Part shown: positions 19,305 through 64,000 of the stretch, piece by piece
Layout: each line of letters opens with the position of its first letter
Position numbering within the stretch: the stretch's first letter is position 1
IMG/VR virus record: IMGVR_UViG_3300023174_000046
Coordinates: 153,414-217,413 of that record
DNA: 64,000 bases
Direction: 5' to 3' (one strand)
Made by a program: the position numbers and the translations under genes
The notes under the pieces: model-generated
Told to the model about the DNA's origin: nothing
Seen by the model: only the letters and a program-made list of their open reading frames with translations
Databases searched by the model: none

Positions 19305-19347
19305 ACAAAAGCTTGACTACATTGAACGTTCCTTTATAATGGGAACA

Positions 19348-19848
19348 ATGAAATCAAAAGTACTTACTTGTATTGTGTCTGGTATTGAGAAGCGGGTGTC
19401 TGGCAGTACCATGAACAAACAATCATTAAAGTTTGGCAATGAAGAACAGTTTGAAAGTCATTTTGTTTGTCGAGAAGCCAAGCAACTACTCAAGAAACGC
19501 ATTCAACCTGATCAAGTACAAGCACAATTGCTTCCCAAAGGCAAAAGACCATTCAGTATTGATCTAGTAGCATTGGCTCGTCTCAAGCTTCTCAAGAAAC
19601 CCAAGTCAGAAAAAAGCAAAGCCAGTACTAATATTGTTTTTGAGCCAACAGGGCCCAGAGAATTTGATAGCTTTCGCGCTTATGTGGAAGAAATGACTGG
19701 TGGCAAGAATCGCTGTCAAGTGGTGCAAGGCGGCACATGCATTCGACCAGACATTTATTATGATAATGAATTCAGTAAGCAGGGCAATTGTTACACCTGC
19801 ACATACAAAGAGTTTTGTTTGTGTGCCAATAAAAAAGTGTTGATGTAA
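19348..19848 (+). CDS. Hypothetical protein, LxCIVxG family with Cys-rich C-terminus
   Basis: TTGACT-16-TATAAT then ATG 19348; paralog of 48017..48319. Confidence 0.7.
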   Translation: MKSKVLTCIVSGIEKRVSGSTMNKQSLKFGNEEQFESHFVCREAKQLLKKRIQPDQVQAQLLPKGKRPFSIDLVALARLKLLKKPKSEKSKASTNIVFEPTGPREFDSFRAYVEEMTGGKNRCQVVQGGTCIRPDIYYDNEFSKQGNCYTCTYKEFCLCANKKVLM

Positions 19849-19874
19849 AGCACTTTTACCGGTATAATACTTGT

Positions 19875-20162
19875 ATGCTAAAAAAGAAAGACGCATACGC
19901 AACAACAAGTAAACTTTGCCGGGTTCTGTCTGCCAGAGAAAGGGGGGAGCGGTTTCCAGTTATTGAGTTAAATTTTCTAGCAGATAAAACTGTTAGCACT
20001 GGCCACAAGGTGTATGTCAATTTAGATTGTGCTAAACGTCTGTTAAGCAATTTACAGAATAACATTGATGTGATTGAATCTACTTATGATGCAGCTAATT
20101 ATTATGAGAGACGCAATTATGAAACTGCCAACGGAACTCGAAGAGATTCAGAACACAATTGA
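19875..20162 (+). CDS. Hypothetical protein
   Basis: TATAAT 6 nt before ATG. Confidence 0.6.
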   Translation: MLKKKDAYATTSKLCRVLSARERGERFPVIELNFLADKTVSTGHKVYVNLDCAKRLLSNLQNNIDVIESTYDAANYYERRNYETANGTRRDSEHN

Positions 20163-20424
20163 GACGCACAACAAAGACGTCTTCATTGATACACACAGTT
20201 TATCTAATTTAGGCATATACCCTATATTGGGTGAAAATAGTTTCGTAGGGTTTGTTTACATCTACGAAAATAAAATTAAAGAGTTTGGCATACTCAACAA
20301 CAATATAGTTGAATATGCACTAACAGAAGGTTTTAAAATAAACGATATTTACAAATCTTTTGATCGAAAATTGTTTTCATTTTACAGCAAAGAAGAGTTT
20401 TTACAAAAGCTTTTGCACAGTTAA
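20119..20424 (+). CDS. Hypothetical protein
   Basis: Likely start MKLPTEL. Confidence 0.55.
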   Translation: MKLPTELEEIQNTIETHNKDVFIDTHSLSNLGIYPILGENSFVGFVYIYENKIKEFGILNNNIVEYALTEGFKINDIYKSFDRKLFSFYSKEEFLQKLLHS

Positions 20425-20427
20425 TAT

Positions 20428-20733
20428 ATGTTTAAAAAAGAATTAAATATTGATATGGAGTTGCCAGAGAAACTTAAAGATCAAGAGGCTTTGGTCAAGT
20501 GGTATGTCAAAGGAATTAACCGTAAAATTTTTACAGCTAAATTCATTGATCCGGTTTCTGCATCAGAAGCTGCCACAAGAATTTTAGAGACTGAAATGAG
20601 AGCCAACGATAAGATTACACTGGCGAAAAAGATTGATGTATATGGCACTCACAAAAACTCAAAAGTGCATACTTTTGACCCAGATATTATTGCCGCAAAT
20701 GCAGGCTACTATTCTCTTAAAAAAAATAATTGA
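20428..20733 (+). CDS. Hypothetical protein
   Basis: ORF track. Confidence 0.6.
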   Translation: MFKKELNIDMELPEKLKDQEALVKWYVKGINRKIFTAKFIDPVSASEAATRILETEMRANDKITLAKKIDVYGTHKNSKVHTFDPDIIAANAGYYSLKKNN

Positions 20734-20763
20734 TTATTATTTTGAATATATTATAATAGGGGT

Positions 20764-21003
20764 ATGTTAAGCAATAAACGTAAACATACAAGGAAAGGAG
20801 GTAGCAAAGTGATCGACTATAATAACCGTAATCTTCGCGCGAAGACGTTCTACGCAAAGTTCACCCGGAACCGCAATGGTTCTTTTGAACTTGCTCGCGT
20901 TAACGTTCTTGACGTTAAGAATCAGTACGCACAGCGTATTCGTCGCGCCGACAAGCGTGACTTTACCCGTGCCCTACGCAACAACAACATCGTTGTAGCC
21001 TAA
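20764..21003 (+). CDS. Basic Arg/Asn-rich early protein; alternative SD-led GTG start at 20809
   Basis: Promoter 20730-20757; AAAGGAGG before in-frame GTG; distinct codon usage. Confidence 0.7.
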   Translation: MLSNKRKHTRKGGSKVIDYNNRNLRAKTFYAKFTRNRNGSFELARVNVLDVKNQYAQRIRRADKRDFTRALRNNNIVVA

Positions 21004-21053
21004 GTGCTGGTTCAAGTTGCCCGTGCTACCTTGGAACGTACACGATTTTCGCC

Positions 21054-21090
21054 GATCCCCGTATATGGCAACTATACGGGGATCTTTTTT
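21054..21090 (+). terminator. Intrinsic terminator
   Basis: GATCCCCGTATA-7-TATACGGGGATC + T6. Confidence 0.9.
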
Positions 21091-21104
21091 GTATAAATAA
21101 CAAC

Positions 21105-21386
21105 ATGGACAAGTTCGAAGATCTTCCAGACTCTGAAGAAACATATCCAGAAGATGAAGAATACATATACTCTGCAAACACCATAAAAGAGATATTAGAA
21201 AAGTTTCGAAACAAATATAATGAACGGTTGGATCCTAATTTTAATCCTGATCTATGGCTGGAAGATTTTACTATATACGATTATGTTATAGAAGTGCAAA
21301 AGCGTAACATGAACAAGTTTGATAAACTTACTGATCAAGGTTACAAGCTAGACTACATGACTGGTGAGTTTAAACTATCTGCTTGA
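21105..21386 (+). CDS. Hypothetical acidic protein (late)
   Basis: TATAAATA at 21092. Confidence 0.65.
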   Translation: MDKFEDLPDSEETYPEDEEYIYSANTIKEILEKFRNKYNERLDPNFNPDLWLEDFTIYDYVIEVQKRNMNKFDKLTDQGYKLDYMTGEFKLSA

Positions 21387-21416
21387 AAGTTTTGAGATTT
21401 CCTTCATAATTCTTGC

Positions 21417-21659
21417 ATGATTAGAAAAGACCCACCATTCCCCATTAAAGAACGTAAAGTTGTGCAAATTTATTCAGATCCTGAAAAAAATAAAAATCGA
21501 TTTGGCCGAATGGTATATCTGCATAAAACTGGTGCTGTGGTCGACGTTATGACCAAGGAACAGTTCAATAATTTTAAGTCTTATGAACCCGGTAGAATGG
21601 GCATAAGTTCAATCAAAACAAGAAGTAAATCTAGCTCCGGCCAAGCGGGAACTATTTAG
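21417..21659 (+). CDS. Hypothetical protein (early)
   Basis: TTGAAA-16-CATAAT-6-ATG. Confidence 0.6.
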   Translation: MIRKDPPFPIKERKVVQIYSDPEKNKNRFGRMVYLHKTGAVVDVMTKEQFNNFKSYEPGRMGISSIKTRSKSSSGQAGTI

Positions 21660-21843
21660 ACTTCTTACGACCTTTTTTCTTTTTCTTTGGAACTACTTCT
21701 TCTTCAAAGGATTCAACATCATAATATTCATTCTTTGCAAATGAATCTTTTACAATATAGCCAATTTGTTCGAAGTAGACAACAAATGCTGAGCCAAGCT
21801 CAGTCACAAGGTCTTTGGTTGCATACAATATAGATGATAGCAT
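21652..21843 (-). CDS. Small protein with Lys-rich tail (late)
   Basis: TAAATA 5 nt upstream on minus strand. Confidence 0.55.
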   Translation of the reverse strand: MLSSILYATKDLVTELGSAFVVYFEQIGYIVKDSFAKNEYYDVESFEEEVVPKKKKKGRKKSK

Positions 21844-21899
21844 AATTATATTTATGAAGAAAAGCTGTTATATCTCAAGAAAACACATATAATATTCAT

Positions 21900-22067
21900 A
21901 TGAGCAAGAGTACAAACAATGCCGGGAAAGGCGACAAAGCGCGTAATTGCTTTAGTAGGCAGTTCAAAGACAATTTTGATATTATTGCCGGTTGGGCATC
22001 CAAAGAGAACAAAGAGATACGAAACTACACATCAAAAAAAGGTAAAAAGATCTACAAATATCCATGA
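21900..22067 (+). CDS. Small protein MSKSTNNAGKGDKAR... (below ORF-track cutoff)
   Basis: 55-aa ORF read by hand; TATAAT-6-ATG; AGKGD motif common in phage small proteins. Confidence 0.55.
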   Translation: MSKSTNNAGKGDKARNCFSRQFKDNFDIIAGWASKENKEIRNYTSKKGKKIYKYP

Positions 22068-22429: not shown

Positions 22430-22430
22430 C

Positions 22431-22522
22431 GCGCGGGTGGTGAAACGGCGAAACACATCTGGCTTAAGATCAGATACGGATTAATGATCACACTGTGGGT
22501 TCAAATCCCACCCCGCGTACCA
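22431..22522 (+). tRNA. tRNA-Leu(UAA)
   Basis: GCGCGGG/CCCGCGT acceptor, TCTGG-CTTAAGA-TCAGA anticodon arm, long variable arm, TTCAAAT T-loop, ACCA. Confidence 0.93.
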
Positions 22523-22959: not shown

Positions 22960-23048
22960 ACCAATATTTATGAGACATATATTATAAATTTTGTGTGTTG
23001 CACTATTTTAATTTTCATGCATAATAAGCATGAACAATAAGGAGATAT

Positions 23049-25047: not shown

Positions 25048-25059
25048 TAGATACAAGTT

Positions 25060-34630: not shown

Positions 34631-35187
34631 AAAGTAAGCAAGAAGTAGAATTACAGGTGAAAAGAATAATGGGCAAGTGGTATGATGAGCCTGTGTTCTC
34701 AAAAAACAAATACATAGAAGCTGCATATCTCTTTTTTTGGAAATGGTATTATAAACTTACTTCCGGTCTTTACTATAATTGCAAGTATGCTGCACAGCGT
34801 TTGTTTAAAGGGTATGATGATTTGGATACATGGAATGCTGCTTGGTATATTGCCAGAAAAGCTATACCTGTTCTTAAAGCAATGAGAGATAGATTTCACG
34901 GTACCAGTATTAAATGGCACAGAGAAGATAGATTTGGTAATATAGAACAATTAACTGTAGATGAAGTGTATGCTGGATCAACAGAACCAGGTTATGAAGG
35001 CCCCAATGCATTCACTGAAGATGAATGGAGAGCCATTCTTGATGATATCATATTTGCATTTCAATGGCAGATAGATCTGGATATATATCATGATACCAGA
35101 GACCAACAAGCGTTTACAGTCGGTGAAAAAAGGCAGAAGAGAGGTTTGCAGTTGTTTAGTATCTATTATAGAAATCTTTGGGATTGA
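34627..35187 (+). CDS. Hypothetical phage protein
   Basis: W..ILDDIIFAF...GLQLFSIYYRNLWD. Confidence 0.65.
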   Translation: MKSKQEVELQVKRIMGKWYDEPVFSKNKYIEAAYLFFWKWYYKLTSGLYYNCKYAAQRLFKGYDDLDTWNAAWYIARKAIPVLKAMRDRFHGTSIKWHREDRFGNIEQLTVDEVYAGSTEPGYEGPNAFTEDEWRAILDDIIFAFQWQIDLDIYHDTRDQQAFTVGEKRQKRGLQLFSIYYRNLWD

Positions 35188-35217
35188 TTTTATTCTAAAT
35201 ACAGTTATAATGTATGT

Positions 35218-35469
35218 ATGATTATTCAATTTGGTAAAGGTGATGAAAGCCCGTACGGTAAATGGGCCGATGATCCAAGAGTTTTTATTGTTAAGCCTCA
35301 CTTTAAAATTGTTTTTGATAACGGGTTAGGATTCTATTTACTGAATTCGTTTAGATTCAATTTGTTTCCAAAATTTTACGGTACATTCCATAAGACGTTT
35401 TGGGAGTTTGGTTTTCGTTTTGCAGGGTTTAATTTTGAAGTGATGTGGAACAAAGCTTTCACAAAATGA
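35218..35469 (+). CDS. Hypothetical protein (early)
   Basis: TTGATT-16-TATAAT-6-ATG. Confidence 0.55.
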   Translation: MIIQFGKGDESPYGKWADDPRVFIVKPHFKIVFDNGLGFYLLNSFRFNLFPKFYGTFHKTFWEFGFRFAGFNFEVMWNKAFTK

Positions 35470-36107: not shown

Positions 36108-37073
36108 CTATAGTATATTTTTATACCATTCTATGGTTTGCTTGAGACCATCTTCAAAGTTAATCTTTGGTTCCCATTTCAGCTCGTTTCGTATCTTGGA
36201 GCTATCAATTGCATATATAAAGTCGTGGCCCTTGCGATCTTCAACAAATTCTATTAAACTGTCTTTGCGTTCAACAATCTCTAAAACCTTTTTTACTAAG
36301 TCTATATTTTTCATAATATCATAGGTTCCTATGTTATAAACTTCACCGCTCTTGCCTTGCTGCAATACAGTTAAAATAGCTCTGCAATGATCTTCTGCAT
36401 GAATCCATTCACGCATGTTGTCACCTTTGCCATAAACAGGTATGGCATGATTGTTAATAGCATTCAATATTGTTTTGGGTAATAGCTTTTCTTTGTGTTG
36501 ATATGGCCCATAGTTATTACTACAACGCGTGACACATACTTCCAGTTTAAACGTCTTGTGATAACTCAATGCAACAAGATCAGCAGAAGCTTTTGATGCT
36601 GAATAAACAGAGCTAGGATTAAGATTTGTTAATTCTGAGAAAAGCGGTTCATCCAAGTTATGCAGTTGACCATATACTTCATCAGTACTAACTTGAATGA
36701 ATTTCTCTACATCATATTTTCTTGAACACTCCAAAAGGTTAAAAGTGCCCACAACATTAGATGATATGAAAGGAGCAGGACCTGTTATGCTGTTATCCAC
36801 ATGTGACTCTGCAGCAATGTTTACTACTAGTTGTGGTTTGATTGCAGCAAAAATAGCATCCATCTTTTGAAAGTTAGATATGTCTTTCTTTATAAACTTT
36901 ATTCTTCTTCGATATTGTTTGTGCTCTTCTAAAAACTTTTTTATGTGTTGTTTCTGAGAAGCATAAGTCTCTGAATCCAGGTTAATAATCTTATAGTCTG
37001 TATTCTCTAATAAATGAATAAGAAAATGCGTGCCTATGAAGCCGTAGCCTCCTGTGACTAATATTTTGGCCAT
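36108..37073 (-). CDS. rmlB: dTDP-glucose 4,6-dehydratase
   Basis: GGYGFIG, AAESHVDNSI, STDEVYG, YSASKAS, NNYGPYQ. Confidence 0.93.
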   Translation of the reverse strand: MAKILVTGGYGFIGTHFLIHLLENTDYKIINLDSETYASQKQHIKKFLEEHKQYRRRIKFIKKDISNFQKMDAIFAAIKPQLVVNIAAESHVDNSITGPAPFISSNVVGTFNLLECSRKYDVEKFIQVSTDEVYGQLHNLDEPLFSELTNLNPSSVYSASKASADLVALSYHKTFKLEVCVTRCSNNYGPYQHKEKLLPKTILNAINNHAIPVYGKGDNMREWIHAEDHCRAILTVLQQGKSGEVYNIGTYDIMKNIDLVKKVLEIVERKDSLIEFVEDRKGHDFIYAIDSSKIRNELKWEPKINFEDGLKQTIEWYKNIL

Positions 37074-37173: not shown

Positions 37174-37268
37174 GCCTCCGTCGTCTAGCGGTCAAGACAC
37201 ACGGCTTATACCCGTGCTCGGCACCAGATTAGTGCATAACGTTGGTTCGAATCCAACCGGAGGTACCA
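37174..37268 (+). tRNA. tRNA-Ile(UAU) with a 24-nt variable region
   Basis: GCCTCCG/CGGAGGT acceptor, CACGG-CTTATAC-CCGTG, GTTGG-TTCGAAT-CCAAC, ACCA. Confidence 0.85.
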
Positions 37269-42657: not shown

Positions 42658-42679
42658 TATTTATATTTAACAATAAATA
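42658..42679. promoter_or_regulatory. Back-to-back T4-type late promoters
   Basis: TATAAATA on minus (42658-42665) and TAAATA on plus (42674-42679), each 5-6 nt from an ATG. Confidence 0.75.
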
Positions 42680-42685
42680 ATATCA

Positions 42686-43435
42686 ATGAATAATAAAGAA
42701 AATCGTCTTATATTTGAAGCTTTTGCAACAAAGCTAATTAAAGAGGATATGCCTTATCCTACATTTGCCAAGCTTGCCAAGCATGCTTCGCCTAAATCGT
42801 CCAAGGAAAAAGATGAAAATGAATACAAAGATCAAATGCCTGATAGCAAAGAAGAATATTCAGCTCATGATTATGCCAAAGAAATGGAAGCCAAGCCCGG
42901 TGAACAAGAAGAACAACCACAAACACATGCGGACATGTCTCATGATCAAAAAGAAGCTGCAATGCTTCTCAAGAAGTTTGGTTACACTTTCTTTGACATG
43001 GACATGCACGGTCGTGATTACGTTGCTTATTTTGTGAACGAAAAGCTCCCTCACAATCATGCAAAGCATGGCATCAAAGTGAAGCATGATGGCATCATAG
43101 TTGGTCCTGCAGATTCCCCTTTCATTGGCAAGAAAGTAAAAGAATTAATTCCTTCAGAAGATGCAGAAGAGCAAGCAGAAGCAGTAGCAGTTTCTGGCCA
43201 ATACAAATACATCTATTTTCTAGATGCTGAAGAATGTTATTCCATTAACCCTTATCAAATTGTGCCGTTCAAGAAAGCAGTAAGAGAGACAAGCAATTGG
43301 ACCAAAGCGCGTGTAATGGTTGGTGAAGATATTGTTCAAATTCTTGGCAAGAGTGTTAAAGATCAAAGAGCTTGGTACATTGTAGGTGCAGAAGCTCCCA
43401 ACGATCATGTATTTGAAGTTTTGTTAGGTAGCTAA
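42686..43435 (+). CDS. Putative internal head protein (LIFE leader)
   Basis: MNNKENRLIFEAF; acidic EDAEEQAE linker. Confidence 0.65.
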   Translation: MNNKENRLIFEAFATKLIKEDMPYPTFAKLAKHASPKSSKEKDENEYKDQMPDSKEEYSAHDYAKEMEAKPGEQEEQPQTHADMSHDQKEAAMLLKKFGYTFFDMDMHGRDYVAYFVNEKLPHNHAKHGIKVKHDGIIVGPADSPFIGKKVKELIPSEDAEEQAEAVAVSGQYKYIYFLDAEECYSINPYQIVPFKKAVRETSNWTKARVMVGEDIVQILGKSVKDQRAWYIVGAEAPNDHVFEVLLGS

Positions 43436-44234: not shown

Positions 44235-44337
44235 TGCCTCTGTTTGACTGATTCACTTGTAATTAAAAAATAATTTTAGTCGACTATATATCAAGAAAAA
44301 CATTGATATTTTCAGTAATATCATGTATACTATAATA

Positions 44338-44958
44338 ATGAGTGAAGATTTAGTCATGCCAGCACCAACTGTTACCATCATAAATGGTTCATTAGGAGGA
44401 AGAACTGGCAACACTAACAATCTCCTGCAAAAAGTTAAGAAGATTATTCTTAAGAAAAACAGTGATACAAATATTAAAGTTGTTCATTTATCACCATCTT
44501 TTGATTGGCTAAAGGTTAAGAGGTGCATTAAAGCTAGTAATATTCTCATTTTCTGTACTGGAACATATTGGGACTCTTGGGGTTCACCCATGCAGCAATT
44601 GTTCGAGAAAATGACACAAATTGAAGGTAAAAAGCATTTGTTAGGCAAACCTGCAGGCGCTATTGTTACAATGCATTCAGTTGGCGGTAAAGAAGTATGC
44701 TCCAGAATTCTTGGCAATCTTGTAGGGCTGGGTTGCATAATACCTCCCTTCACAGGCTTTGCATATGCATACTCAGATCATATTGCGCATCGCTCCAGAG
44801 TATCAGGCAAGAAGCTGTTGGATGATGTGTGGCATATTGACGATCTGGAAGCTTTTGTGCACAACCTATTTGAAGCGCATAAAGGTACAAAGGATTACAT
44901 GGTCTGGGATTACCTGGATACGCAAGCAATGGACCCCAGTTATGTTTGGCTTAAGTAA
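44338..44958 (+). CDS. NADPH-dependent FMN reductase / flavodoxin family
   Basis: INGS....GNT, TGTYW.S, LLGKPAGAIVT. Confidence 0.75.
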   Translation: MSEDLVMPAPTVTIINGSLGGRTGNTNNLLQKVKKIILKKNSDTNIKVVHLSPSFDWLKVKRCIKASNILIFCTGTYWDSWGSPMQQLFEKMTQIEGKKHLLGKPAGAIVTMHSVGGKEVCSRILGNLVGLGCIIPPFTGFAYAYSDHIAHRSRVSGKKLLDDVWHIDDLEAFVHNLFEAHKGTKDYMVWDYLDTQAMDPSYVWLK

Positions 44959-45768: not shown

Positions 45769-46080
45769 ATGTTCGAGTTTCTTAAAAACTTCTTTGCAGG
45801 ATCAAAATATAAGATATATGTTACAGGGCCAAATACTTTAGCAGAACTATTAACACAGTTTGATCAGCCACCCAAAGAGAAAACTAAAGAAGATATCATT
45901 CGTGACTATACCATAAAAGAAACCATGGCTTCATTGGAATTATCATATCTAAAAGAAGATCCTTCAATTTTCTTTACAGGCAATCAAAAATGGTTTGATG
46001 GTGAAGGTAATAAGTATTTTGACTTTGTGCCTTGTGCATTAAGACCGGAAGTTTTGTATTGCTCATATGGCAAAAATTAA
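45769..46080 (+). CDS. Hypothetical protein
   Basis: ORF track. Confidence 0.55.
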   Translation: MFEFLKNFFAGSKYKIYVTGPNTLAELLTQFDQPPKEKTKEDIIRDYTIKETMASLELSYLKEDPSIFFTGNQKWFDGEGNKYFDFVPCALRPEVLYCSYGKN

Positions 46081-46574: not shown

Positions 46575-46856
46575 TTATCGGAAGTTTCCGAGCTCTCTAT
46601 CGAGAGTGTATTCAGCAGGCTTTTGAACTAATGTATCCCAAGAGTTCTCTGCCTCTCCTGCCATAGCTGTGAAGGGAGAGGTTACTGCATAGGCTGTGAA
46701 GCCTAGCGTTGTGCCTACAAATGTAAATGGTCGCACCAAAGCAACATCAACTGCTTGCAAGCAAACAGGTGCATCTTCATTTGTAGAATCAACGTCTGCA
46801 AATGCTGCGGTAGCAAGAGCTACACTAACAGCAATACCGACTAGTGTTTTGTTCAT
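46575..46856 (-). CDS. Exported host-type small membrane protein (late)
   Basis: Signal peptide; D..LVRP.....T..G.....SPF...G...LV..PA.YT..R.LG; TAAATA upstream. Confidence 0.6.
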   Translation of the reverse strand: MNKTLVGIAVSVALATAAFADVDSTNEDAPVCLQAVDVALVRPFTFVGTTLGFTAYAVTSPFTAMAGEAENSWDTLVQKPAEYTLDRELGNFR

Positions 46857-46884
46857 GGGATTATTTATTGTGTGACAACTTAAA

Positions 46885-47166: not shown

Positions 47167-47242
47167 ATTACTATTTTAATATAATCTTTAAGAATGCTAC
47201 TTTTTTATTGAACTATTATAAACGGTGAGTTATAATCGTTGC

Positions 47243-47926
47243 ATGGCCGAGAGAATAACAAACAAATGGACCAAGGATCTCAAAGGAGCCTTTGGAGATA
47301 CACAACAAATTAAAAAAGCTATCAAAGGCGAGCAAATGTGGGAGCGTTATGCTCGAGGCAAATATGCCAGTGTAATTAACCATAGCGCTGATAGGAGCAA
47401 ACAAACTGCAGGTGTTGATTTTACTATCACTGGCAGGTCTTTGCCTAACCCTGTTACTGTAGATGTAAAGGCCAATATGAAATGGGGGTTCTTCTATGTG
47501 GAGAATAATCCTACAGGCTGGTTGAGAAACTCCAACAAAATAACAGATTGGATTGCACACATAGATATACACAGGGGTTATGTGTGTGAGTATAGCAGAG
47601 TAGATATGATTGCTTATCTTGATGAGAAAGGTTATAAGCAGGATCTTGTTAGATTATCTAACTACAAAACAGGTATTCAGAGTTTTATTAGAAAATATTG
47701 GCTCAAAAAAAGTTACACAAGCAAATCAAAATCTCGACCCAAATTTTCTGAACAATATGCGCATACAAATGCTGCAAAGTATTATACATATAGTACGCGT
47801 CAATATTATAGAAGAGACGAAAAACCTTGGGATACAGACAAATATCCTATGGAAGAGTATAATGATGTTACAGATACATTTTATTATCCTTATGGGGAAG
47901 TCAGAGGATTTAGCGATTCGGACTAA
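47243..47926 (+). CDS. PD-(D/E)XK nuclease-like protein
   Basis: KGE...GVDF...VDVK; TTGAAC-17-TATAAT-6-ATG. Confidence 0.6.
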   Translation: MAERITNKWTKDLKGAFGDTQQIKKAIKGEQMWERYARGKYASVINHSADRSKQTAGVDFTITGRSLPNPVTVDVKANMKWGFFYVENNPTGWLRNSNKITDWIAHIDIHRGYVCEYSRVDMIAYLDEKGYKQDLVRLSNYKTGIQSFIRKYWLKKSYTSKSKSRPKFSEQYAHTNAAKYYTYSTRQYYRRDEKPWDTDKYPMEEYNDVTDTFYYPYGEVRGFSDSD

Positions 47927-48016
47927 TCGTATCTTCATAACTTGTTCTGAATCATTAAAGAAAAAAATCTAAAAAATATAGTTGAACAGATCCGGAAAGC
48001 ACATATAATTGGACTT

Positions 48017-48319
48017 ATGAAAAATAGCAACACTAACACGAACCAACAGAAGCAGAAAACCCCAACCCTTGCCTGTATTGTTACAGGTAAGAGCCGCTTG
48101 ACCAACCAGGAATACCTGGAAAACAAGGCCACGGCTGCAGGCGCAACGGTCGAAGAGATCGTTAGCCATTACGTTACCCGTGAGGTTCTTAAGAACCTTC
48201 GCAAGGGTGACTTGCAGGGCTTGTCGCAGGAGGTTGCCACCCGCATTCTCCGCCTCAATGGCAAGCAGAAGGGTGCTTCGAAGGCTCGTAAATCTTCTGA
48301 GACGGCGGTTGCCGTTTAA
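48017..48319 (+). CDS. Early protein, LxCIVxG family
   Basis: Own promoter and terminator; GC-richer codons. Confidence 0.7.
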   Translation: MKNSNTNTNQQKQKTPTLACIVTGKSRLTNQEYLENKATAAGATVEEIVSHYVTREVLKNLRKGDLQGLSQEVATRILRLNGKQKGASKARKSSETAVAV

Positions 48320-48350
48320 ATCAGAGTAACGCCCGAGGTGTTACACAGGG

Positions 48351-48385
48351 GGAGGGAGGTTCTTTGAGCCTCCCTCCTTTCTTTT
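48351..48385 (+). terminator. Intrinsic terminator
   Basis: GGAGGGAGGTTC-TTT-GAGCCTCCCTCC + TTTCTTTT. Confidence 0.85.
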
Positions 48386-48420: not shown

Positions 48421-48497
48421 TATTGTAAGAACAAACTTACAAAGCGGAACCGTGACGCGAAAGGAAGCATTGAGTGAAATCAATGCTTCCTTTTTTT
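48421..48497 (+). ncRNA. Candidate ~75-nt small RNA
   Basis: TATAAT at 48410, 7-bp hairpin TTGTAAG/CTTACAA, 13-bp terminator, no ORF. Confidence 0.5.
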
Positions 48498-48694
48498 ATT
48501 TTTTCATCTTGAATCATACCGCGGAGAATATATACTAATGGTATGATGAATAAAAAAGAGAAAAAAATTAAAATATCCGATGAAGAAATTGAATTGCTTG
48601 AAACTGGCTCAACAAATATCGATTGGTTAAATTTTTATAAAGAAATATTTAAATAAAGCTTGCTTAATGAATTGGTTTATTATATATTAGGAGC

Positions 48695-48797
48695 ATGAGA
48701 TTTCGGAGGCCGACAGTTAGGTTAAGCCGGTTCACCTCAAAGTAACCGGTTCATCATCGTAGTTCTCGGGTCTACGTTAAAAAACCGAGATTTTTTT
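48695..48797 (+). promoter_or_regulatory. Leader peptide + hairpin + H-type pseudoknot + U7 (attenuator/riboswitch-like)
   Basis: MRFRRPTVRLSRFTSK; CGTAG/CTACG and TCTCGG/CCGAGA stems. Confidence 0.5.
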
Positions 48798-49010: not shown

Positions 49011-49209
49011 ACATCTTCAAGAATTACTTGAACAACTCAAAGAAGAGTTGGAATCAATCCACCGAAACGATAAGTTAAGAGGCGGAACAACAGGTCATCG
49101 ATCTGGTTCTCGCTTAACAACTACTAGACAAATGTTATTGATTGTTAATCATTTAGCTCAAGAAGCTTTTTGGTCTTGATTTAGTCATAAATTCATTTAC
49201 AATTGTAGT

Positions 49210-49524
49210 ATGATGAATGAAAAACCAACGTGGTTCTACACGAACGCCCCCACAAAAAAAGCGGCGCTCAAATTAATGAAGTCAGAACATAAAGTCAAAC
49301 TGGCTCGTCGACTGTGTAATGTTGATGAGTTTGTAAAGAGAATGAAAGGCTCCAAGGGTACTTGGCTGCATTCTCAACTCGATAAACAATGTCTTAATGT
49401 TTTGATTGGAGAGTTCTTAACTCAAGACCCGAGAGAATACTGGAACAAGTATGGACGGGTTGATGAAGACAAGCTTAATTTCGTTATGAAAAAAGCTACA
49501 AAAAAGAACTTGACAGCATTATAA
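49210..49524 (+). CDS. Hypothetical protein (early)
   Basis: TTGATT-16-TACAAT-6-ATG. Confidence 0.6.
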   Translation: MMNEKPTWFYTNAPTKKAALKLMKSEHKVKLARRLCNVDEFVKRMKGSKGTWLHSQLDKQCLNVLIGEFLTQDPREYWNKYGRVDEDKLNFVMKKATKKNLTAL

Positions 49525-50945: not shown

Positions 50946-51328
50946 TGAGCCGCTCTGATCACATCATAGAAAACCGAGCATCTGCTAGCTACATTGCTGA
51001 ATATGGTGCACCCAAGCTTGAGCTAGAGAATGTGCATCAATTCAAGAATGATACTCAAAACAATCTCAACAATAAAATTAAAGCTCGGTTGGGTGATTTG
51101 CAGAAAGAATATAAAGAGCTGGAAGATTTATATCATTACAATGTATTTGTTGATCAATTTGAGCATAACTTTATTCCAGTAACAGGTCATGTATATTTTC
51201 TGTATGACTATAACAACCATAAGTTCCTGAGTCTCATAGAGCCAGAGAATTTCTTATTGTGCAAAGAAGGATTTGTAGGTAGATGTCGCTACAATGGTTT
51301 AGGCTTCTTTGAAAAAATAGTTGACTAG
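50945..51328 (+). CDS. DUF2452-like protein
   Basis: F.PV.G..Y.LY.....FLSLI.P. Confidence 0.6.
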   Translation: MSRSDHIIENRASASYIAEYGAPKLELENVHQFKNDTQNNLNNKIKARLGDLQKEYKELEDLYHYNVFVDQFEHNFIPVTGHVYFLYDYNNHKFLSLIEPENFLLCKEGFVGRCRYNGLGFFEKIVD

Positions 51329-51354
51329 ATTCTAGATTCAGATATAATATTGGT

Positions 51355-51621
51355 ATGATGAAAAAACAAACGAACAAAGAATACAGCCTGTTGGTGTTTA
51401 TGAAAGCTCAGCACAAATATACCGATTCCGAGGTTCATCTTGAAACATTGTGCAAAGAGAAGTATAATGGGCGAGGTGTTGGAGGGGGTACTAACTTGAG
51501 CAATGGCAAGCGAGATCAGCAATTTGTTTTCGAGAGTAAAACAGATGCAAAAGCTTTTCTTAGACATCCTTTTACTAAAGCAGTTATTCTTAAAGATTAT
51601 GATCTTGTGGAGATTGATTAA
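51355..51621 (+). CDS. Hypothetical protein (early)
   Basis: TTGACT-16-TATAAT-6-ATG. Confidence 0.6.
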   Translation: MMKKQTNKEYSLLVFMKAQHKYTDSEVHLETLCKEKYNGRGVGGGTNLSNGKRDQQFVFESKTDAKAFLRHPFTKAVILKDYDLVEID

Positions 51622-51622
51622 T

Positions 51623-52000: not shown

Positions 52001-52035
52001 GTTGACTCATTTCAAATTTCAGCCATAATATGTGT

Positions 52036-52317
52036 ATGATGAAAACAATGACAGCAACACAATATCAGAAACAGTTTGAAATGGATTGGAAGGAGTGGCA
52101 GGGAGTGATGAAGAACCTTTCTCCTCTAACTCAGATGCAGGTTCGCTCTGGTGCATCCTATAAGTTGAGCAGAGAGATGGAAGGCACAGGGTGTGGCATT
52201 GGCTCTTCAGATATTAATCATGAGATGTTTGGCATCTGGAAGGGCAATGCAAAAGATACAGATGCATATGTTCAGGAGTGTGTGGAGCTTTATGAGGAGC
52301 GCATCAATGCATCTTAA
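52036..52317 (+). CDS. Hypothetical protein (early)
   Basis: TTGACT-16-CATAAT-6-ATG. Confidence 0.6.
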   Translation: MMKTMTATQYQKQFEMDWKEWQGVMKNLSPLTQMQVRSGASYKLSREMEGTGCGIGSSDINHEMFGIWKGNAKDTDAYVQECVELYEERINAS

Positions 52318-56444: not shown

Positions 56445-56634
56445 CTAAATAATTGCATGACATATGCGCGCTTAAGAGACATCATTGGTATGATGAATGG
56501 TGCACAATTGAATGCACCTGTTAAAGTGGTTGTGGCTGGCAAAGAGATTTTCATTGACAGAGTGGATGCAGAAGATAACAATGCAAATGCTCCTTATCTC
56601 AATTCAAACAAAGACGTTTAATTTTTGAACAAGG

Positions 56635-57705: not shown

Positions 57706-57713
57706 AACAGTAT

Positions 57714-60086: not shown

Positions 60087-60089
60087 GTG

Positions 60090-60596: not shown

Positions 60597-60834
60597 ATCT
60601 AATTATTTATGAATAAATAAAATAAAAATAGGCTGGAGCTTGAGTGAATAATCACATATAATAACAACATGCCCAAGAAGAAAGTAACATTAAGAACGGT
60701 GAGAGAGCTGGGTAAAAGGATTGCAAAGAACAAGCCTTTTGTAGGTGAATGCATTGACCGAACTTCTGGTAAAATCATTAATTTGGACGGTCGGCTTGTG
60801 AGAAAATTAGGAAAGAAATCTAAATAATATTGAT

Positions 60835-61347
60835 ATGGTTAATGATAGTCACTTGATATTTGAAAATTATGTGGATGGCATCTCCAAAAGAAAAGGTGAG
60901 CTGGCCGGAAACATCATGGACATTGTGAGATACGGTATTCCTTCCAAAGAAGAGTTTATTAAGATCAGACAAGAACTGCATGACAAAACAAAAGAAATTT
61001 TAGACAGAGGTACTCCTGCAACAGAAGAAGAGAAACACCGAGGCAGGCAGTTGATAGGCATGATAAGATCCTACAGAGCTCAACATCCCAATGATCCTCC
61101 TGTGGCTAAAAACCTGCATCATGCAGAAGAGAGTGCAGAAAATACACAGCCTGCAGATGTATCCAATGAAATCAGAATCAAATTGGGACAAGCCTATAAT
61201 ATAGTCAAAGGTTTAATTGAGCTGCTGGACAAGACACCCTCAGAACAAACACCATACAATGAGATGGCCATAACCCATCTGGCCAATCTGGAGGAAGATT
61301 TAAAAGAATTATCCATGATGCTTCAAGACAGAATGCTGGGTAAATAA
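60835..61347 (+). CDS. Putative internal head protein (LIFE leader)
   Basis: MVNDSHLIFENY; EESAEN linker; TAAATA 60821. Confidence 0.65.
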   Translation: MVNDSHLIFENYVDGISKRKGELAGNIMDIVRYGIPSKEEFIKIRQELHDKTKEILDRGTPATEEEKHRGRQLIGMIRSYRAQHPNDPPVAKNLHHAEESAENTQPADVSNEIRIKLGQAYNIVKGLIELLDKTPSEQTPYNEMAITHLANLEEDLKELSMMLQDRMLGK

Positions 61348-61352
61348 TTGAT

Positions 61353-62225
61353 ATGAGAAAAGATGATCATTTGATATTTGAATCTTTTATTAATAAGAAA
61401 GGTGATGCTGGCGTTGGTCGGCCGGCTTCAGAAGAAGAAATTAACGTTAGTAAAGCTGATCTGAACAAGGATAAACAATTGAGTGATTATGAATTGGCCC
61501 GGGCTAAAGCCATGGACAAAGCCATGCACAAAGATGAACAAGCAGAGAGCAAGTCTACAGGCCGAGGTGCAGTGAATGACATAGTGGTTTCAGAGTTGCA
61601 TAAGATACATACAGCATTGAATCAGATGTCTAGCATGATTGATTTAAATCCTAGTGCAGAGGTGGATCAATTGTTATCTAAGATAAGGGATGTGGCTGAT
61701 ATGCTAATTGCAGAAAGGCCTGCAGAGAATGAAGAGAGTGCGGATGAAAGAAAAGAGCGGGTACAAAGAGGATGGGATATAAACAAGAAGAGATGGGCTA
61801 AATGGAAGATGGAGAATCCAGAGGCTGCTGCTAAACATGCTGCAAAGAAAGCTACTGGTAAAGAAGAGAGTGCAGAGAATGAACCACATGGTTATCCTCA
61901 GGGAATGACAGCTATTCAGAACTTGTTGTTAAATGAATTGAAGAAGTATGGCTTTGAATTAACAAGAATTAGTCATACAGATAAAGAGAGAGACAAGTAC
62001 CCAACGGTATTCATGCATAATAAGAGTGGACCGATGCATAGGGTAGTAGAGATTAGCGGTATGGGTGAGATCAATGGTGAGCCTTATAAGAAGTATCTGG
62101 CTGATTTAAAAGAGAAAATCAAACGTTTATCTGGTATAAGACCTGAAAATCCAGAAGATCCTTATTATGATACATGGCAGAGCATTGCTCAAGATCATGC
62201 TGGTGAAGAAGAAGAAGATTGCTAG
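61353..62225 (+). CDS. Modular putative internal head protein (LIFE leader)
   Basis: MRKDDHLIFESF; EQAE, ENEESADE, EESAENE linkers; ADLNKDKQLSDYE. Confidence 0.65.
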   Translation: MRKDDHLIFESFINKKGDAGVGRPASEEEINVSKADLNKDKQLSDYELARAKAMDKAMHKDEQAESKSTGRGAVNDIVVSELHKIHTALNQMSSMIDLNPSAEVDQLLSKIRDVADMLIAERPAENEESADERKERVQRGWDINKKRWAKWKMENPEAAAKHAAKKATGKEESAENEPHGYPQGMTAIQNLLLNELKKYGFELTRISHTDKERDKYPTVFMHNKSGPMHRVVEISGMGEINGEPYKKYLADLKEKIKRLSGIRPENPEDPYYDTWQSIAQDHAGEEEEDC

Positions 62226-62412
62226 ACAGTATAAAAAGCAGTTGTTTTGCCAAAAAGCACACGTAAAATTACAAAAAGCATAGTGTATTCTGCAAAACTA
62301 TGATGCTTTATCTGAAGAGATATAGTAGATCATAACAAGAAACATGCCGGAAATACAGAAATACCGATAAAAAGAAGTTGACTATTACGGAGACTCAGCC
62401 ATAATAATAGGC

Positions 62413-62745
62413 ATGATCACTTATACAGGCTACAAACAATACCCACAACCTACTGATAACGATAACGCACACCCTTTACTACCCAATGCACCTATAGGCC
62501 TACCCCTAGAAACCATCATGTCGCTATCAGAAGATACCAGACAGCTGTATGATCTGATATACGATTACTGTACCTATGCTAGTGACCCCCAATACCAGAC
62601 ACTCCACAAGTTCCGTAACCGGATAGCTCGCATAGAGAATACCGTTGAACGGGATATACTCATTGCTTACTTTAATAACGATCCTGCTATTAAATGGAAT
62701 GGCATGACAGAGGCACCTTACGAATACTATGCTAAGCCTTACTAA
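62413..62745 (+). CDS. Hypothetical early protein (C-rich coding strand)
   Basis: TTGACT-16-CATAAT-7-ATG. Confidence 0.6.
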   Translation: MITYTGYKQYPQPTDNDNAHPLLPNAPIGLPLETIMSLSEDTRQLYDLIYDYCTYASDPQYQTLHKFRNRIARIENTVERDILIAYFNNDPAIKWNGMTEAPYEYYAKPY

Positions 62746-62817
62746 ACGTGAGACGACTATTATCCCCGTTTGGTTATTATCCTTGACTCGTATTATACGT
62801 ACACATATAATATACAC

Positions 62818-63102
62818 ATGAGCCCGGCAGCAGACATTGAGTGGATTCAGCAAGAAGTACTCAATCAAGTGGATGTTGTTGTGGAGCAGTTTACTGTATA
62901 CGATCCACACAAACTACTAGACCTTAGCAAGGTGATTGTTAGTTCCATTATAGATAAGATTGATGTGGCCCATGTACTTGGCATGTACTATCATATAGCA
63001 GCAACTAAGGATACTGTGTCTGCACCTGAAGACCGTCTACAGTGTGTGTATGATCATTTTAATGAATGGGTGGAATTAGAACTGGCCAAACGGTATGCTT
63101 AA
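62818..63102 (+). CDS. Hypothetical early protein
   Basis: TTGACT...TATAAT-6-ATG 62818. Confidence 0.55.
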   Translation: MSPAADIEWIQQEVLNQVDVVVEQFTVYDPHKLLDLSKVIVSSIIDKIDVAHVLGMYYHIAATKDTVSAPEDRLQCVYDHFNEWVELELAKRYA

Positions 63103-63343
63103 TGTGGCTATTGATGTGTTGTGTGCTGGCATCATACCCTTCTTCTTTGTTTGCTTTGGCATCATTTGGTTTGTATTTAAGATTATAGATATTTTTAAGA
63201 AGAAGTAAAGCTTCTGTAACTCCTTCATTTTGGAGGTTTGCTAAATGGTTGATCTCCCCTACCATACTGTAACTACTTGATACTACAATTGTATTTGTAG
63301 TTTGTTGATTCACAACAATCCAACCACCCTTCATACTCAACAC

Positions 63344-63357
63344 CTTTACGCGTAAAG
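63344..63357. other. Perfect 14-bp palindrome CTTTACGCGTAAAG near the C/G skew switch
   Basis: Read directly. Confidence 0.7.
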
Positions 63358-63503
63358 TAGCGGTCCAGAGCCCCCCTCTCCTCTCTTAATTTTCAAGATG
63401 GTTCCGCTTTCCCTAACTTATCCATATAGTATAAAGGAATTGCAGATTTGGTCAATATGTATTTTGTTGTTGTGTTGAAGCAAACTTCCCATATAATATA
63501 AGA

Positions 63504-63674
63504 ATGAAAATTAATAAAAATGAATTGAAGGTGGGTTACATATTTGAAGGTGGTGAGGGTAGTGATGAAATTGTAGTGCATATTGATAAAGATGATGGGA
63601 TGGTTTATTGTAGGCATTTAGAGGAAGATGGTAACAGATATAAAATTGAAAGGGATGGTAGTATTAAAGTTTGA
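63504..63674 (+). CDS. 56-aa protein with C-depleted coding strand (below ORF-track cutoff)
   Basis: MKINKNELKVGYIFEGGEGSDEIVVHIDKDDGMVYCRHLEEDGNRYKIERDGSIKV; 4 C in 171 nt. Confidence 0.6.
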   Translation: MKINKNELKVGYIFEGGEGSDEIVVHIDKDDGMVYCRHLEEDGNRYKIERDGSIKV

Positions 63675-63676
63675 GG

Positions 63677-63705
63677 TTGACAAAATATTAAATTACAGAT
63701 ATAAT
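63677..63705 (+). promoter_or_regulatory. Perfect sigma70 consensus promoter
   Basis: TTGACA-N17-TATAAT, ATG 6 nt later. Confidence 0.9.
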
Positions 63706-63711
63706 ATAAAA

Positions 63712-64000
63712 ATGAAAATTAATAATAGAGAATTGAATAAGAAAGTTAGGGAATTGTTTGTTAAGAAATTGAATATGGAAGGTTATGATGGTAGTGTTAA
63801 AGTTAAATGTAATTGTGAGAGGTATAATAATGAATTGTGTAATGGTTATAAGATTGTGTGGAAGAGTTATGGATGGTTTGGATATGAAAAGGTTTGGAGA
63901 TATATTGTAGAAGAAATTAATAAAATTGATAGTGGTTGGGTATTGTTAGAAAGTGCAAGTTGGAGGGGAGATGGTAATGTGTGGGGAATGAGTAAAGAAT
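63712..64000 (+). CDS. Early protein with nearly C-free coding strand (3'-truncated)
   Basis: MKINNRELNKKVRELFVKK...; one C in 289 nt. Confidence 0.7.
   Translation, partial: MKINNRELNKKVRELFVKKLNMEGYDGSVKVKCNCERYNNELCNGYKIVWKSYGWFGYEKVWRYIVEEINKIDSGWVLLESASWRGDGNVWGMSKE

Follow-up and report, generated by a model that had tools for sequence, protein, structure and literature searches.

In the leaderless transcriptomes of Mycobacterium, Deinococcus and haloarchaea, a TAnnnT -10 element lies a fixed few bases before ATG or GTG, no Shine-Dalgarno (SD) motif is present and both AUG and GUG are used at the 5' end, although in these cellular genomes a quarter to 60% of genes are leaderless and the leadered genes use SD (PMC3898074, PMC4633059, PMC4007540). 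In phages the classic example is the lambda cI mRNA, which is made from the sigma-70 promoter PRM and begins with the AUG of its coding sequence. T4 late promoters (TATAAATA) depend on gp55, gp33 and gp45, lack a -35 element and have a TATA box about one helical turn upstream of the transcription start site (PMC2988020). In T4 this box lies tens of bases before the start codon. T4-type early promoters are strong -35/-10 promoters read by the host sigma-70 in front of many small genes, all on one strand. Downstream genes that overlap their neighbours may be translated by termination-reinitiation coupling (PMC6728339).

An uncultured, deep-branching T4-like phage of 217 kb from lake metagenomes, together with its many relatives, places both its putative early and its putative late promoters so close to the start codon that most mRNAs should begin at AUG or GUG with no ribosome-binding leader. 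No report of such a design for T4-type phages was found in the papers searched. The sequence analysed here (the window) is the last 64 kb of this phage.

Promoter motifs next to start codons in the window

An earlier note listed 18 sites in which a sigma-70-like promoter directly precedes ATG, and this observation was confirmed at every one of them. All 18 have a -35 TTG, a spacer of 16 nt (15 sites) or 17 nt (47208, 48660 and 63677), a TATAAT-like -10 hexamer and then 6 nt (most sites) or 7 nt before the ATG. However, the ATG at 48660 opens only a 16-codon ORF and that at 48509 a 37-codon ORF, whereas the other 16 open ORFs of 54-298 codons. Seven sites of the same kind had been missed (4870, 19840, 44303, 49510, 52914, 62783 and 63470). 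At most sites no in-frame start lies further upstream (16 of the 24 window sites tested). The strict pattern TTGA-N18-YAYAMT-N6-ATG occurs 11 times in the window versus 0.10 +/- 0.36 in 100 dinucleotide-preserving shuffles. Sites of this type (E-type) are as follows, with coordinates running from the promoter to the start codon.

4870..4909 (+), TTGACT-N17-TATAAT-N8-ATG, 258 aa
19313..19350 (+), TTGACT-N16-TATAAT-N7-ATG, 166 aa; the longest-ORF start at 19339 lies inside the -10
19840..19877 (+), TTGATG-N17-TATAAT-N6-ATG, 95 aa
20730..20766 (+), TTGATT-N16-TATAAT-N6-ATG, 79 aa
21383..21419 (+), TTGAAA-N16-CATAAT-N6-ATG, 80 aa
31186..31223 (+), TTGACT-N16-CATAAT-N7-ATG, UvdE-like endonuclease, 298 aa; geometry kept in 8 relatives
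35184..35220 (+), TTGATT-N16-TATAAT-N6-ATG, 83 aa
44303..44340 (+), TTGATA-N17-TATACT-N6-ATG, FMN-reductase-like, 206 aa
45259..45295 (+), TTGAAT-N16-TATAAT-N6-ATG, 56 aa
47208..47245 (+), TTGAAC-N17-TATAAT-N6-ATG, 227 aa
47982..48019 (+), TTGAAC-N16-TATAAT-N7-ATG, 100 aa; followed by two strong terminator-like hairpins at 48348-48380 and 48459-48494
48509..48545 (+), TTGAAT-N16-TATACT-N6-ATGATG, only a 37-codon ORF
48660..48697 (+), weaker site, TTGCTT-N17-TATATT-N6-ATG, only a 16-codon ORF of doubtful coding status
49176..49212 (+), TTGATT-N16-TACAAT-N6-ATGATG, 104 aa
49510..49548 (+), TTGACA-N16-TATAAT-N8-ATG, KaiC/DnaB-like ATPase, 302 aa; the 8 nt read ATAAGGAG
51321..51357 (+), TTGACT-N16-TATAAT-N6-ATGATG, 88 aa
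52002..52038 (+), TTGACT-N16-CATAAT-N6-ATGATG, 93 aa
52914..52953 (+), looser site, TTGAAC-N16-CATAAT-N9-ATG, 49 aa
53074..53110 (+), TTGAAC-N16-TATAAT-N6-ATG, 82 aa
53988..54024 (+), TTGACC-N16-CATAAT-N6-ATGATG, 177 aa
55637..55673 (+), TTGATT-N16-TATAAT-N6-ATG, 54 aa
62378..62415 (+), TTGACT-N16-CATAAT-N7-ATG, 110 aa
62783..62820 (+), TTGACT-N17-TATAAT-N6-ATG, 94 aa; the longest-ORF TTG start at 62770 lies upstream of the -35
63470..63506 (+), TTGTGT-N16-TATAAT-N6-ATG, 56 aa
63677..63714 (+), TTGACA-N17-TATAAT-N6-ATG; the ORF runs off the end of the record

A second motif, TAAATA, which is the core of the T4 late promoter, lies a similarly short distance before other start codons. In the window, TAAATA-N5-ATG occurs 13 times versus 2.0 expected. 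These sites (L-type) are found on both strands.

6481..6493 (+), TAAATA-N4-GTG, 270 aa
7714..7727 (+), TAAATA-N5-ATG, 76 aa
8681..8694 (+), TAAATA-N5-ATG, small ORF heading the portal (gp20) gene
10661..10674 (+), TAAATA-N5-ATG, gp13-like head-tail adaptor, 358 aa; the TAA is the stop codon of the portal gene
12196..12209 (+), TAAATA-N5-GTG, gp15-like, 235 aa
14595..14609 (+), TAAATA-N6-ATG, 1565-aa protein
20444..20457 (+), TAAATA-N5-ATG, 92 aa from this ATG
21094..21107 (+), TAAATA-N5-ATG, 93 aa
21841..21854 (-), TAAATA-N5-ATG, 63 aa
22957..22970 (-), TAAATA-N5-ATG, 152 aa
25801..25815 (-), TAAATA-N6-ATG, 247 aa
33711..33724 (-), TAAATA-N5-ATG, 280 aa
38516..38530 (+), TAAATA-N6-ATG, 295 aa
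42650..42663 (-), TAAATA-N5-ATG, 366 aa from this ATG; back to back with the next site
42674..42688 (+), TAAATA-N6-ATG, 249 aa, divergent partner of the previous site
46854..46867 (-), TAAATA-N5-ATG, 93 aa from this ATG
56446..56459 (+), TAAATA-N5-ATG, 54 aa
57703..57716 (-), TAAATA-N5-ATG, virion-structural-like protein, 356 aa
60594..60609 (-), TAAATA-N7-ATG, 168 aa
61341..61355 (+), TAAATA-N6-ATG, 290 aa

Genome-wide distribution and conservation

Across the whole genome (about 281 genes, called crudely by codon-usage scoring without a trained gene finder), about 112 genes abut a promoter. A relaxed E-type definition fits 52 of 280 gene starts versus 0.95% of 4019 internal ATGs, with a sharp peak in the distance from -10 to ATG at 6 nt (39/52) and a spacer of 16 nt in 35/52. 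The replication genes gp43 and gp41 carry the form TTG-N16-TAnnnT-N6-start. The L-type motif precedes 60 of 280 gene starts, mostly of structural genes, versus 0.12% of internal ATGs, at a distance of 5 nt (32 times) or 6 nt (14 times). Only 12/60 of these motifs use the TAA as an upstream stop codon. Moreover, TAAATA is depleted inside genes on both strands, with 68 sense and 67 antisense occurrences versus 153+/-11 and 176+/-13 after codon shuffling, while control hexamers are not depleted, so this is a DNA-level signal. A gp55 homologue is encoded (41% identity to syn9 gp55, with a weak Sigma70_r2 match), although gp33 and gp45 homologues were not detected. No sigma with region 4 is encoded, so -35-dependent promoters must use the host sigma.

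SD motifs are essentially absent. SD-like tetramers at -17..-5 occur at 0/35 E-type starts and 2/60 L-type starts, versus a background of 4.3%. The capsid gene is an exception, with a conserved leader carrying AAGGAG. About 112 genes overlap or start within 5 nt of the upstream gene, including 38 ATGA overlaps, 11 one-base overlaps and many gaps of 0-5 nt, which suggests coupled translation.

The geometry is kept in relatives sharing about 62-98% protein identity while the spacer letters change. For the UvdE gene, 8 relatives (76-90% identity) keep TTG-N16-TAtAaT-N6-ATG with different spacer and discriminator letters, whereas two distant phages (50% identity) have TATAAT, a 30-nt leader, AAGGAG and a TTG start instead. 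For the gp21 protease, about 20 of 22 relatives (62-98% identity) keep TAAATA a few nt (mostly 4-6) before ATG. The same distance peaks appear in 80 related loci, and the complete 229.7-kb relative has 19 strict hits versus 2 for the control pattern. Cyanophage syn9 shows no such peak. Pfam alignments begin at residues 7 and 11 of the UvdE-like and FMN-reductase-like proteins, respectively.

Leaderless expression as a proposed explanation

Leaderless expression across the whole programme, in every temporal class, is the best explanation of these data, with a probability of about 0.75. In this view, early and replication genes carry promoters of the host primary-sigma type (TTGAnn, a 16-nt spacer, TAtAaT) whose hexamer ends 6 nt (sometimes 7) before ATG, so that RNA polymerase, which normally starts at the 7th-8th base after the -10, should start on the A of ATG. 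Late, mostly structural, genes would carry (A/T)TAAATA, read by the gp55-like sigma of the phage and ending 5 nt (sometimes 6) before ATG or GTG, which again puts +1 on the first base of the start codon. Downstream genes of each unit, overlapping or touching the preceding stop codon, are probably translated by termination-reinitiation, and SD pairing would therefore hardly be used. The motifs, their fixed distances and statistical excess, the absence of SD, the avoidance of TAAATA inside genes, the presence of gp55 and the conservation of the geometry were demonstrated directly by the sequence analysis. However, that transcription really starts on the start codon, that the resulting mRNAs are translated by the leaderless route in the host, and the early or late timing of the genes are inferences from sequence alone. 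Two metatranscriptome runs yielded only assembled contigs of related strains, and one contig (47926-48283) runs through the promoter at 47982, so read-through RNA or DNA carry-over exists. Moreover, spacings of 7-9 nt at some sites imply leaders of 1-3 nt, and nine L-type and three E-type starts are GTG, which is poorly used on leaderless mRNA in E. coli, though it works in mycobacteria and Deinococcus.

The interpretation offered in the earlier note is only partly supported. The promoters are of sigma-70 type, the expected start (the 7th base after the -10) is the A of ATG, and no SD is present. As the note had proposed, several ORF starts need correction, since longest-ORF starts fall inside the promoter (or, at 62770, upstream of its -35) and should move from 19339 to 19348, 44323 to 44338, 47225 to 47243, 52030 to 52036 and 62770 to 62818. 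The note's comparison with T4 early promoters (GTTTAC-17) is loose, because the spacer here is mostly 16 nt. Its proposal that leaderless initiation is a device of the early programme, allowing early genes to resist a shut-off of SD-led translation, is not supported as stated. Between 19 and 64 kb of the window the E-type sites are all on the plus strand in a block of small genes of unknown function, like a T4 early region. However, late-type and replication genes share the geometry and SD is absent from nearly all phage genes, so the idea has no contrast within the phage to rest on, and no RegB- or MazF-like gene was found. An early-only version is therefore considered very unlikely.

The most plausible alternative, although still unlikely, is that the promoters are real but that transcription starts a few bases before the start codon or at scattered positions, giving leaders of 1-10 nt that are translated because they are A/U-rich and unstructured (S1-type or standby binding) and not by the true 5'-AUG route. 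This is suggested by the spacings of 7-9 nt at 4870, 19313, 31186, 47982, 49510, 52914 and 62378, by the tail sheath gene, which has TATAAATA-N8-ATG, by seven E-type starts that are ATGATG doublets and would tolerate a slipped start, and by the weak folding of the first 40 nt of E-type genes (-2.2 versus -3.8 kcal/mol for internal windows, p = 3e-4). However, the distances are very narrow (6 nt in 39/52 E-type sites and 5 nt in 32 of 46 close TAAATA sites), exactly where +1 is expected, and this spacing is kept in relatives.

It is less likely again that TAAATA, and perhaps TATAAT, acts on RNA as a non-SD ribosome-binding or enhancer motif on long polycistronic mRNAs, as in SD-poor hosts such as Bacteroidota. 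The near absence of SD, the generally A/T-rich upstream regions and the presence of a bS21-like gene would be consistent with this, since phage bS21 genes have been linked to Bacteroidetes hosts, which lack SD use (PMC9723584). However, TAAATA is avoided equally on the antisense strand of genes, which an RNA signal would not require, E-type sites carry a -35 TTG at a fixed 16-nt spacing, gp55 is encoded and the motif is the core of the gp55-type late promoter, and the motif also stands at divergent gene pairs with no upstream gene on the same strand, for example 42650/42674. A chance product of a tightly packed genome of 37% G+C, in which weak matches are common (a generic promoter scan found 101 promoter-like sites in 20 kb versus 66 in shuffles), is refuted by the 110-fold excess of the strict pattern over shuffles, by rates 20- to 170-fold higher at real starts than at internal ATGs, and by conservation in relatives but not in syn9.

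Comparison with described systems

The bS21-like gene is a 71-codon ORF (genome 89387-89602, outside the window) with a weak match (23 bits, below the Pfam cut-off of 27), and it lies among replication genes rather than in the structural block described for phage bS21 (PMC9723584). Any link to leaderless translation is speculation. The present phage resembles Far-T4 phages and Rhodothermus phage RM378 (PMC4360716, PMC7198788) in representing an uncultured, deep T4-related lineage common in lakes and sea water, and RM378 also has an A/T box at a fixed distance from starts (TATTTAA-N6-ATG in 8 of 20 occurrences in its first 50 kb). However, other RM378 genes have clear GGAGG SD sites, and the portal of the present phage is only 26% identical to that of RM378, against 35% to cyanophage portals.

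Compared with known termination-reinitiation, coupling here appears to be the main route for every gene without a promoter of its own, and SD-like motifs occur in only 13% of coupled starts. Compared with T4-type early promoters, the E-type sites share strong -35/-10 elements in front of many small genes on one strand, but have a spacer of 16 rather than 17 nt, no expected leader and, in a subset, an extra TTCC/TTCAG-like element just upstream of the -10. The L-type sites resemble T4 late promoters in their (T/A)ATAAATA-like box without a -35 element, the A/T-rich bases just downstream and the position in front of structural genes, but the box lies 5-6 nt before the start codon, whereas in syn9 the distances cluster at about 20-29 nt. 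The lambda cI mRNA concerns one regulatory gene in a phage that otherwise uses SD, whereas here about 40% of genes, including structural ones, have this arrangement. Finally, in contrast to the leaderless cellular transcriptomes, the present case is a virus in which two different sigma specificities (host sigma and gp55) are both placed for a start on the start codon, and in which SD is nearly absent from the other genes too.

The phage and the search for its host

The window is the last 64 kb (153414-217413) of a 217,413-bp IMG/VR virus record rated 100% complete, with 37% G+C and no nucleotide match among GenBank phages by megablast. A tblastn search with the core proteins of cyanophage syn9 identified homologues of T4 gp4, 6, 13, 15, 17, 18, 20, 21, 23, 25, 32, 41, 43, 44, 46, 47, 55, 61, UvsW, UvsX, NrdAB and PhoH, so that both core replication and virion genes of the T4-like phages are present. 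However, the portal, capsid and DNA polymerase are only 31-35% identical to those of any isolate, and the phage is therefore a deep-branching T4-like phage. Its DNA occurs in lake and freshwater metagenomes from several studies, and at least 598 IMG/VR contigs encode a capsid protein about 70-95% identical to its own, including a complete 229.7-kb relative. The group may correspond to, or lie near, the uncultured 'Far-T4' phages (PMC4360716, PMC7198788), although the portal is only 26% identical to that of Rhodothermus phage RM378, the one cultured Far-T4 phage. The record is linear, but the block of sigma-70-type promoters at the end of the window (63677-64000) continues at genome 670, 2089 and 2897 (genome 1-3000) and the ORF starting at window 63712 runs off the end, so the ends of the record probably join (circular permutation).

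None of the searches identified the host. Core proteins are 31-35% identical to cyanophage and pelagiphage proteins, no WhiB and no Por_Secre_tail domain was found, and Atlas look-ups gave no taxon signal. Capsid relatives in genome bins carry inconsistent labels (Bacteriovoracaceae, Terrimicrobiaceae, Proteobacteria, an archaeon), which looks like mis-binning. The canonical -35/-10 promoters argue against a Bacteroidota host, since Bacteroidota promoters have the form TTTG / TAnnTTTG. However, a weak bS21-like ORF and the lack of Shine-Dalgarno (SD) sites would fit one (PMC9723584). The genome has 16 tRNAs which mostly read A-ending codons, suggesting a host richer in G+C than the phage. The loci outside the promoter set to which this section and the following ones refer are:

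Window 1892-3310: tryptophan-halogenase-like gene.
Window 12920-14533: RCC1-repeat protein.
Window 22431-22522: tRNA-Leu(TAA), called at 92 nt.
Window 36108-37073, minus strand: dTDP-glucose dehydratase/epimerase-like gene, with a TTGATT-N15-TATTAT-N6-ATG promoter.
Window 37174-37268: tRNA-Ile(TAT), called at 95 nt, about 20 nt longer than a normal class I tRNA (an insertion or a mis-call).
Window 48348-48380 and 48459-48494: two strong terminator-like hairpins (15-bp stems followed by T runs), back to back after gene 48017-48319.
Genome 45852-45928, minus strand, outside the window (5853-5929 of segment L007): intergenic leader of the major capsid gene.
Genome 89387-89602, outside the window (15388-15600 of segment L006): 71-codon ORF resembling ribosomal protein bS21.

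The bS21-like ORF scores 23 bits in Pfam, below the cut-off of 27, its nearest Atlas clusters are viral S21, and hits to bS21 in the PDB are weak. It is one of the few genes with an SD-like AAGGA before its GTG.

Two promoter classes abutting start codons

The earlier note described 18 sites in which a TTG -35 element, a 16- or 17-nt spacer and a TATAAT-like -10 element stand 6-7 nt before an ATG, and this observation is confirmed, as every one of the 18 has that build. The strict pattern TTGA-N18-YAYAMT-N6-ATG occurs 11 times in the window, all on the plus strand, against 0.10 expected from shuffles. Seven further sites of this kind (hereafter E-type) had been missed, at 4870, 19840, 44303, 49510, 52914, 62783 and 63470. 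Of 24 window sites tested, 22 open ORFs of 49 codons or more and 16 have no possible in-frame start further upstream. Homologues in relatives align from residue 1, and Pfam models begin at residues 7 and 11 of two of the proteins, supporting, from sequence alone, the promoter-proximal start codon as the true N-terminus. However, the ATGs at 48509 and 48660 open only 37 and 16 codons and are doubtful as genes. Both lie just after the paired terminator-like hairpins, and this could be a small RNA or peptide locus.

Crude gene calls were made for the whole genome (281 genes, 93% coding; codon-usage scoring without a trained gene finder), and the E-type class was widened to any TAnnnT as the -10 element. 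This adds, among others, the genes for DNA polymerase gp43, helicase gp41, a glycosyltransferase and the sugar epimerase, which read TTGATT-N16-TATTAT-N6-ATG. With this definition 52 of 280 starts are E-type, against 0.95% of internal ATGs, with a 16-nt spacer in 35 and a distance to the start of 6 nt in 39. The hexamers are those of host primary-sigma (sigma-70-type) promoters, TTGACA-like and TATAAT-like and 16-18 nt apart. No phage sigma with a region 4 was found, so these -35-dependent promoters should be read by the host's primary sigma. A subset, in window 19313-63714 and at 218781-228407 of a relative (G001), shares an extra element just upstream of the -10 (..TTCCnn / ..TTCAGC before TATAAT/CATAAT) and several continue with gtATGATGAA, which may be a factor-binding site or a duplicated promoter-start cassette. 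Seven E-type genes (window 48509, 49176, 51321, 52002 and 53988; genome 670 and 2089) begin with a double ATGATG, far above the expected frequency of Met as second codon, and this may buffer a transcription start that slips by a few bases.

A second motif, not recognised in the note, is TAAATA, usually (A/T)TAAATA (L-type), which ends exactly 5 nt (32 times) or 6 nt (14 times) before start codons. In all, 60 of 280 starts have it at 4-7 nt, against 0.12% of 4019 internal ATGs, and the window holds 13 copies of TAAATA-N5-ATG against 2.0 expected. These sites, before the ATG or GTG of mostly structural genes, include window 7714, 8681, 10661, 12196, 14595, 21841 (minus), 22957 (minus), 33711 (minus) and 57703 (minus). 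The motif precedes the genes for the gp21 protease, gp25, the gp13- and gp15-like proteins, the small ORF that heads the portal gene, and several very large structural proteins. In the 'early' part of the window it heads nearly all minus-strand genes, while the sigma-70-type sites are all on the plus strand, recalling the strand split between early and late genes in T4.

Several lines of evidence indicate that TAAATA is a promoter element. It is the core of the T4 late promoter TATAAATA, a box which has no -35 partner, sits about one helical turn before the start site and is followed by A/T-rich bases (PMC2988020). The phage also encodes a homologue of the gp55 late sigma (41% identity to syn9 gp55 over 95 aa, E = 2.5e-17; weak Sigma70_r2 match). 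Moreover, the motif is under-represented inside genes on both strands, with 68 and 67 copies against 153+/-11 and 176+/-13 after codon shuffling, whereas TAATAA and AATAAA are not depleted. Avoidance on the antisense strand is what a DNA signal predicts, not an RNA signal. The possibility that TAAATA is a by-product of stop codons was rejected because only 12 of 60 copies use their TAA as the stop of the upstream gene. For the gp33 co-activator and gp45 sliding clamp, both small, fast-evolving proteins, there was no tblastn hit with the syn9 sequences, no Pfam DNA_PPF hit and no PHROGs match among the neighbours of gp44, although the gp44 clamp loader itself is present.

SD motifs are largely missing from these starts, with GGAG, GAGG or AGGA at -17..-5 in 0 of 35 E-type and 2 of 60 L-type starts against a background of 4.3%. 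Among the remaining genes, 112 start within 5 nt of, or overlap, the stop codon of the gene before, with 38 ATGA overlaps and 11 one-base overlaps. SD-like tetramers stand before 13% of these coupled starts, against the same 4.3% background, and before almost none of the others. The major capsid gene is a conserved exception, as its 77-nt intergenic leader holds a short hairpin (GAGGC...GCCT), an invariant GGTCGA of unexplained role, and AAGGAG or AAGGAA 8-13 nt before ATG in 19 relatives (within the set L011-L074). No Rfam family matches this leader. Upstream of the same gene, AAATACTAA was considered as a late promoter, but the alignment shows that it is the C-terminus and stop codon of the upstream gene. 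The capsid leader hints that the host's ribosomes can use SD when it is offered.

Conservation and the inferred leaderless mechanism

The geometry is kept in relatives while the surrounding letters change. For the UvdE-like gene (31221), eight relatives 76-90% identical in protein keep TTG, a 16-nt spacer, TAtAaT, 6 nt and then ATG, with differing spacer and discriminator letters. In contrast, two distant phages (IMG/VR contigs L105 and L106) with a 50%-identical copy have TATAAT, a 30-nt leader, AAGGAG and a TTG start, providing a natural contrast between leadered and leaderless versions of one gene. About 20 of the 22 relatives examined for the gp21 protease (62-98% identical) keep TAAATA a few nt (mostly 4-6) before ATG, while the flanks vary. 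Across eighty related loci (784 kb), TAAATA is followed by ATG at 5 nt 147 times and at 6 nt 72 times, over a background of about 10-50 at other spacings, and the E-type pattern is followed by ATG at 6 nt in 28 of 70 cases. The complete 229.7-kb relative has 19 strict E-type hits against 2 for the reversed control pattern, and three other large relatives have 4-6 against 0. Cyanophage syn9, a classical T4-like phage used as a control, shows no peak and its TAAATA boxes lie about 20-29 nt before ATG. Additionally, contigs of related strains break homology at or next to promoter/start modules (window 52001-52054, 52306/52659-52951 and 53077; for example the joints 52306>52951 and 52659>52951, where 52951 is an ATG), and gene cassettes appear to be swapped at these boundaries.

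With a sigma-70 holoenzyme the -10 hexamer spans -12 to -7, so that six bases separate it from +1 and N6 would put +1 on the A of ATG. For the late box, TAAATA-N5 would put the 8-bp box at -13 to -6, which is where the T4 box lies. The base before the start codon is a pyrimidine in about 65% of both classes and the start codon begins with a purine, as RNA polymerase prefers. Nine L-type and three E-type starts are GTG at the same distance. On leaderless mRNA, 5'-GUG works in mycobacteria and Deinococcus (PMC4633059, PMC4007540). It works poorly in E. coli, making these starts a clue about the host. The first 40 nt of E-type genes fold weakly, but this is only weakly discriminating. The only RNA sequences found, in a comparison covering 6,000 bases, were assembled Logan contigs in two metatranscriptomes from strains 90-99% alike, which cannot show 5' ends, and one of them crosses a promoter. 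All of this fits leaderless expression. However, while the motifs, their spacings and their conservation are observed directly, the start of transcription on the start codon and the binding of ribosomes directly to a 5' AUG are inferred.

The interpretation offered in the earlier note is thus partly supported. Leaderless expression is most likely, but its restriction to an early programme, and a role in letting early genes escape a shut-off of SD-led translation, are not supported, and no RegB or MazF/PemK match was found among candidate shut-off nucleases. A much broader reading, possible but unlikely on present evidence, is that a whole, globally distributed clade of large T4-like phages has given up SD-led initiation. 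Every transcription unit, whether read by the host sigma or by gp55, would begin at AUG/GUG and the remaining genes would be reinitiation-coupled. With its bS21-like protein the phage might then re-tune or disable SD-dependent initiation in the host without harming its own expression, giving a translational take-over built into genome architecture. This would be of considerable interest if true.

Significance and relation to known systems

Leaderless mRNAs are usually treated as rare exceptions in phages and as a trait of certain cellular lineages. Here two unrelated promoter classes in one virus are both placed for a start on the start codon, and the arrangement is conserved across a large uncultured clade, which points to selection for SD-free expression of a whole 217-kb genome. 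The finding gives simple rules that correct gene starts and define transcription units in these metagenomic phages. It also suggests that the host translates 5'-AUG and 5'-GUG mRNAs well and has a TTGACA/TATAAT-reading primary sigma, and it raises the question of whether a phage gains control of translation by not depending on the anti-SD.

Leaderless mRNAs, T4 late promoters and reinitiation coupling are each well known. However, literature searches found no description of leaderless design in T4-like phages, and no report of a T4-type phage in which early, replication and late promoters all abut the start codon. In the giant phage phiKZ, dRNA-seq found no leaderless transcript at all (PMC8244752). 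RM378 shows a related feature, with TATTTAA exactly 6 nt before ATG in 8 of the 20 occurrences of the motif in its first 50 kb (1-50000), beside other genes with GGAGG SD sites. This is a similar promoter-abutting design in a cultured phage, and offers a phage-host pair in which a first test is possible.
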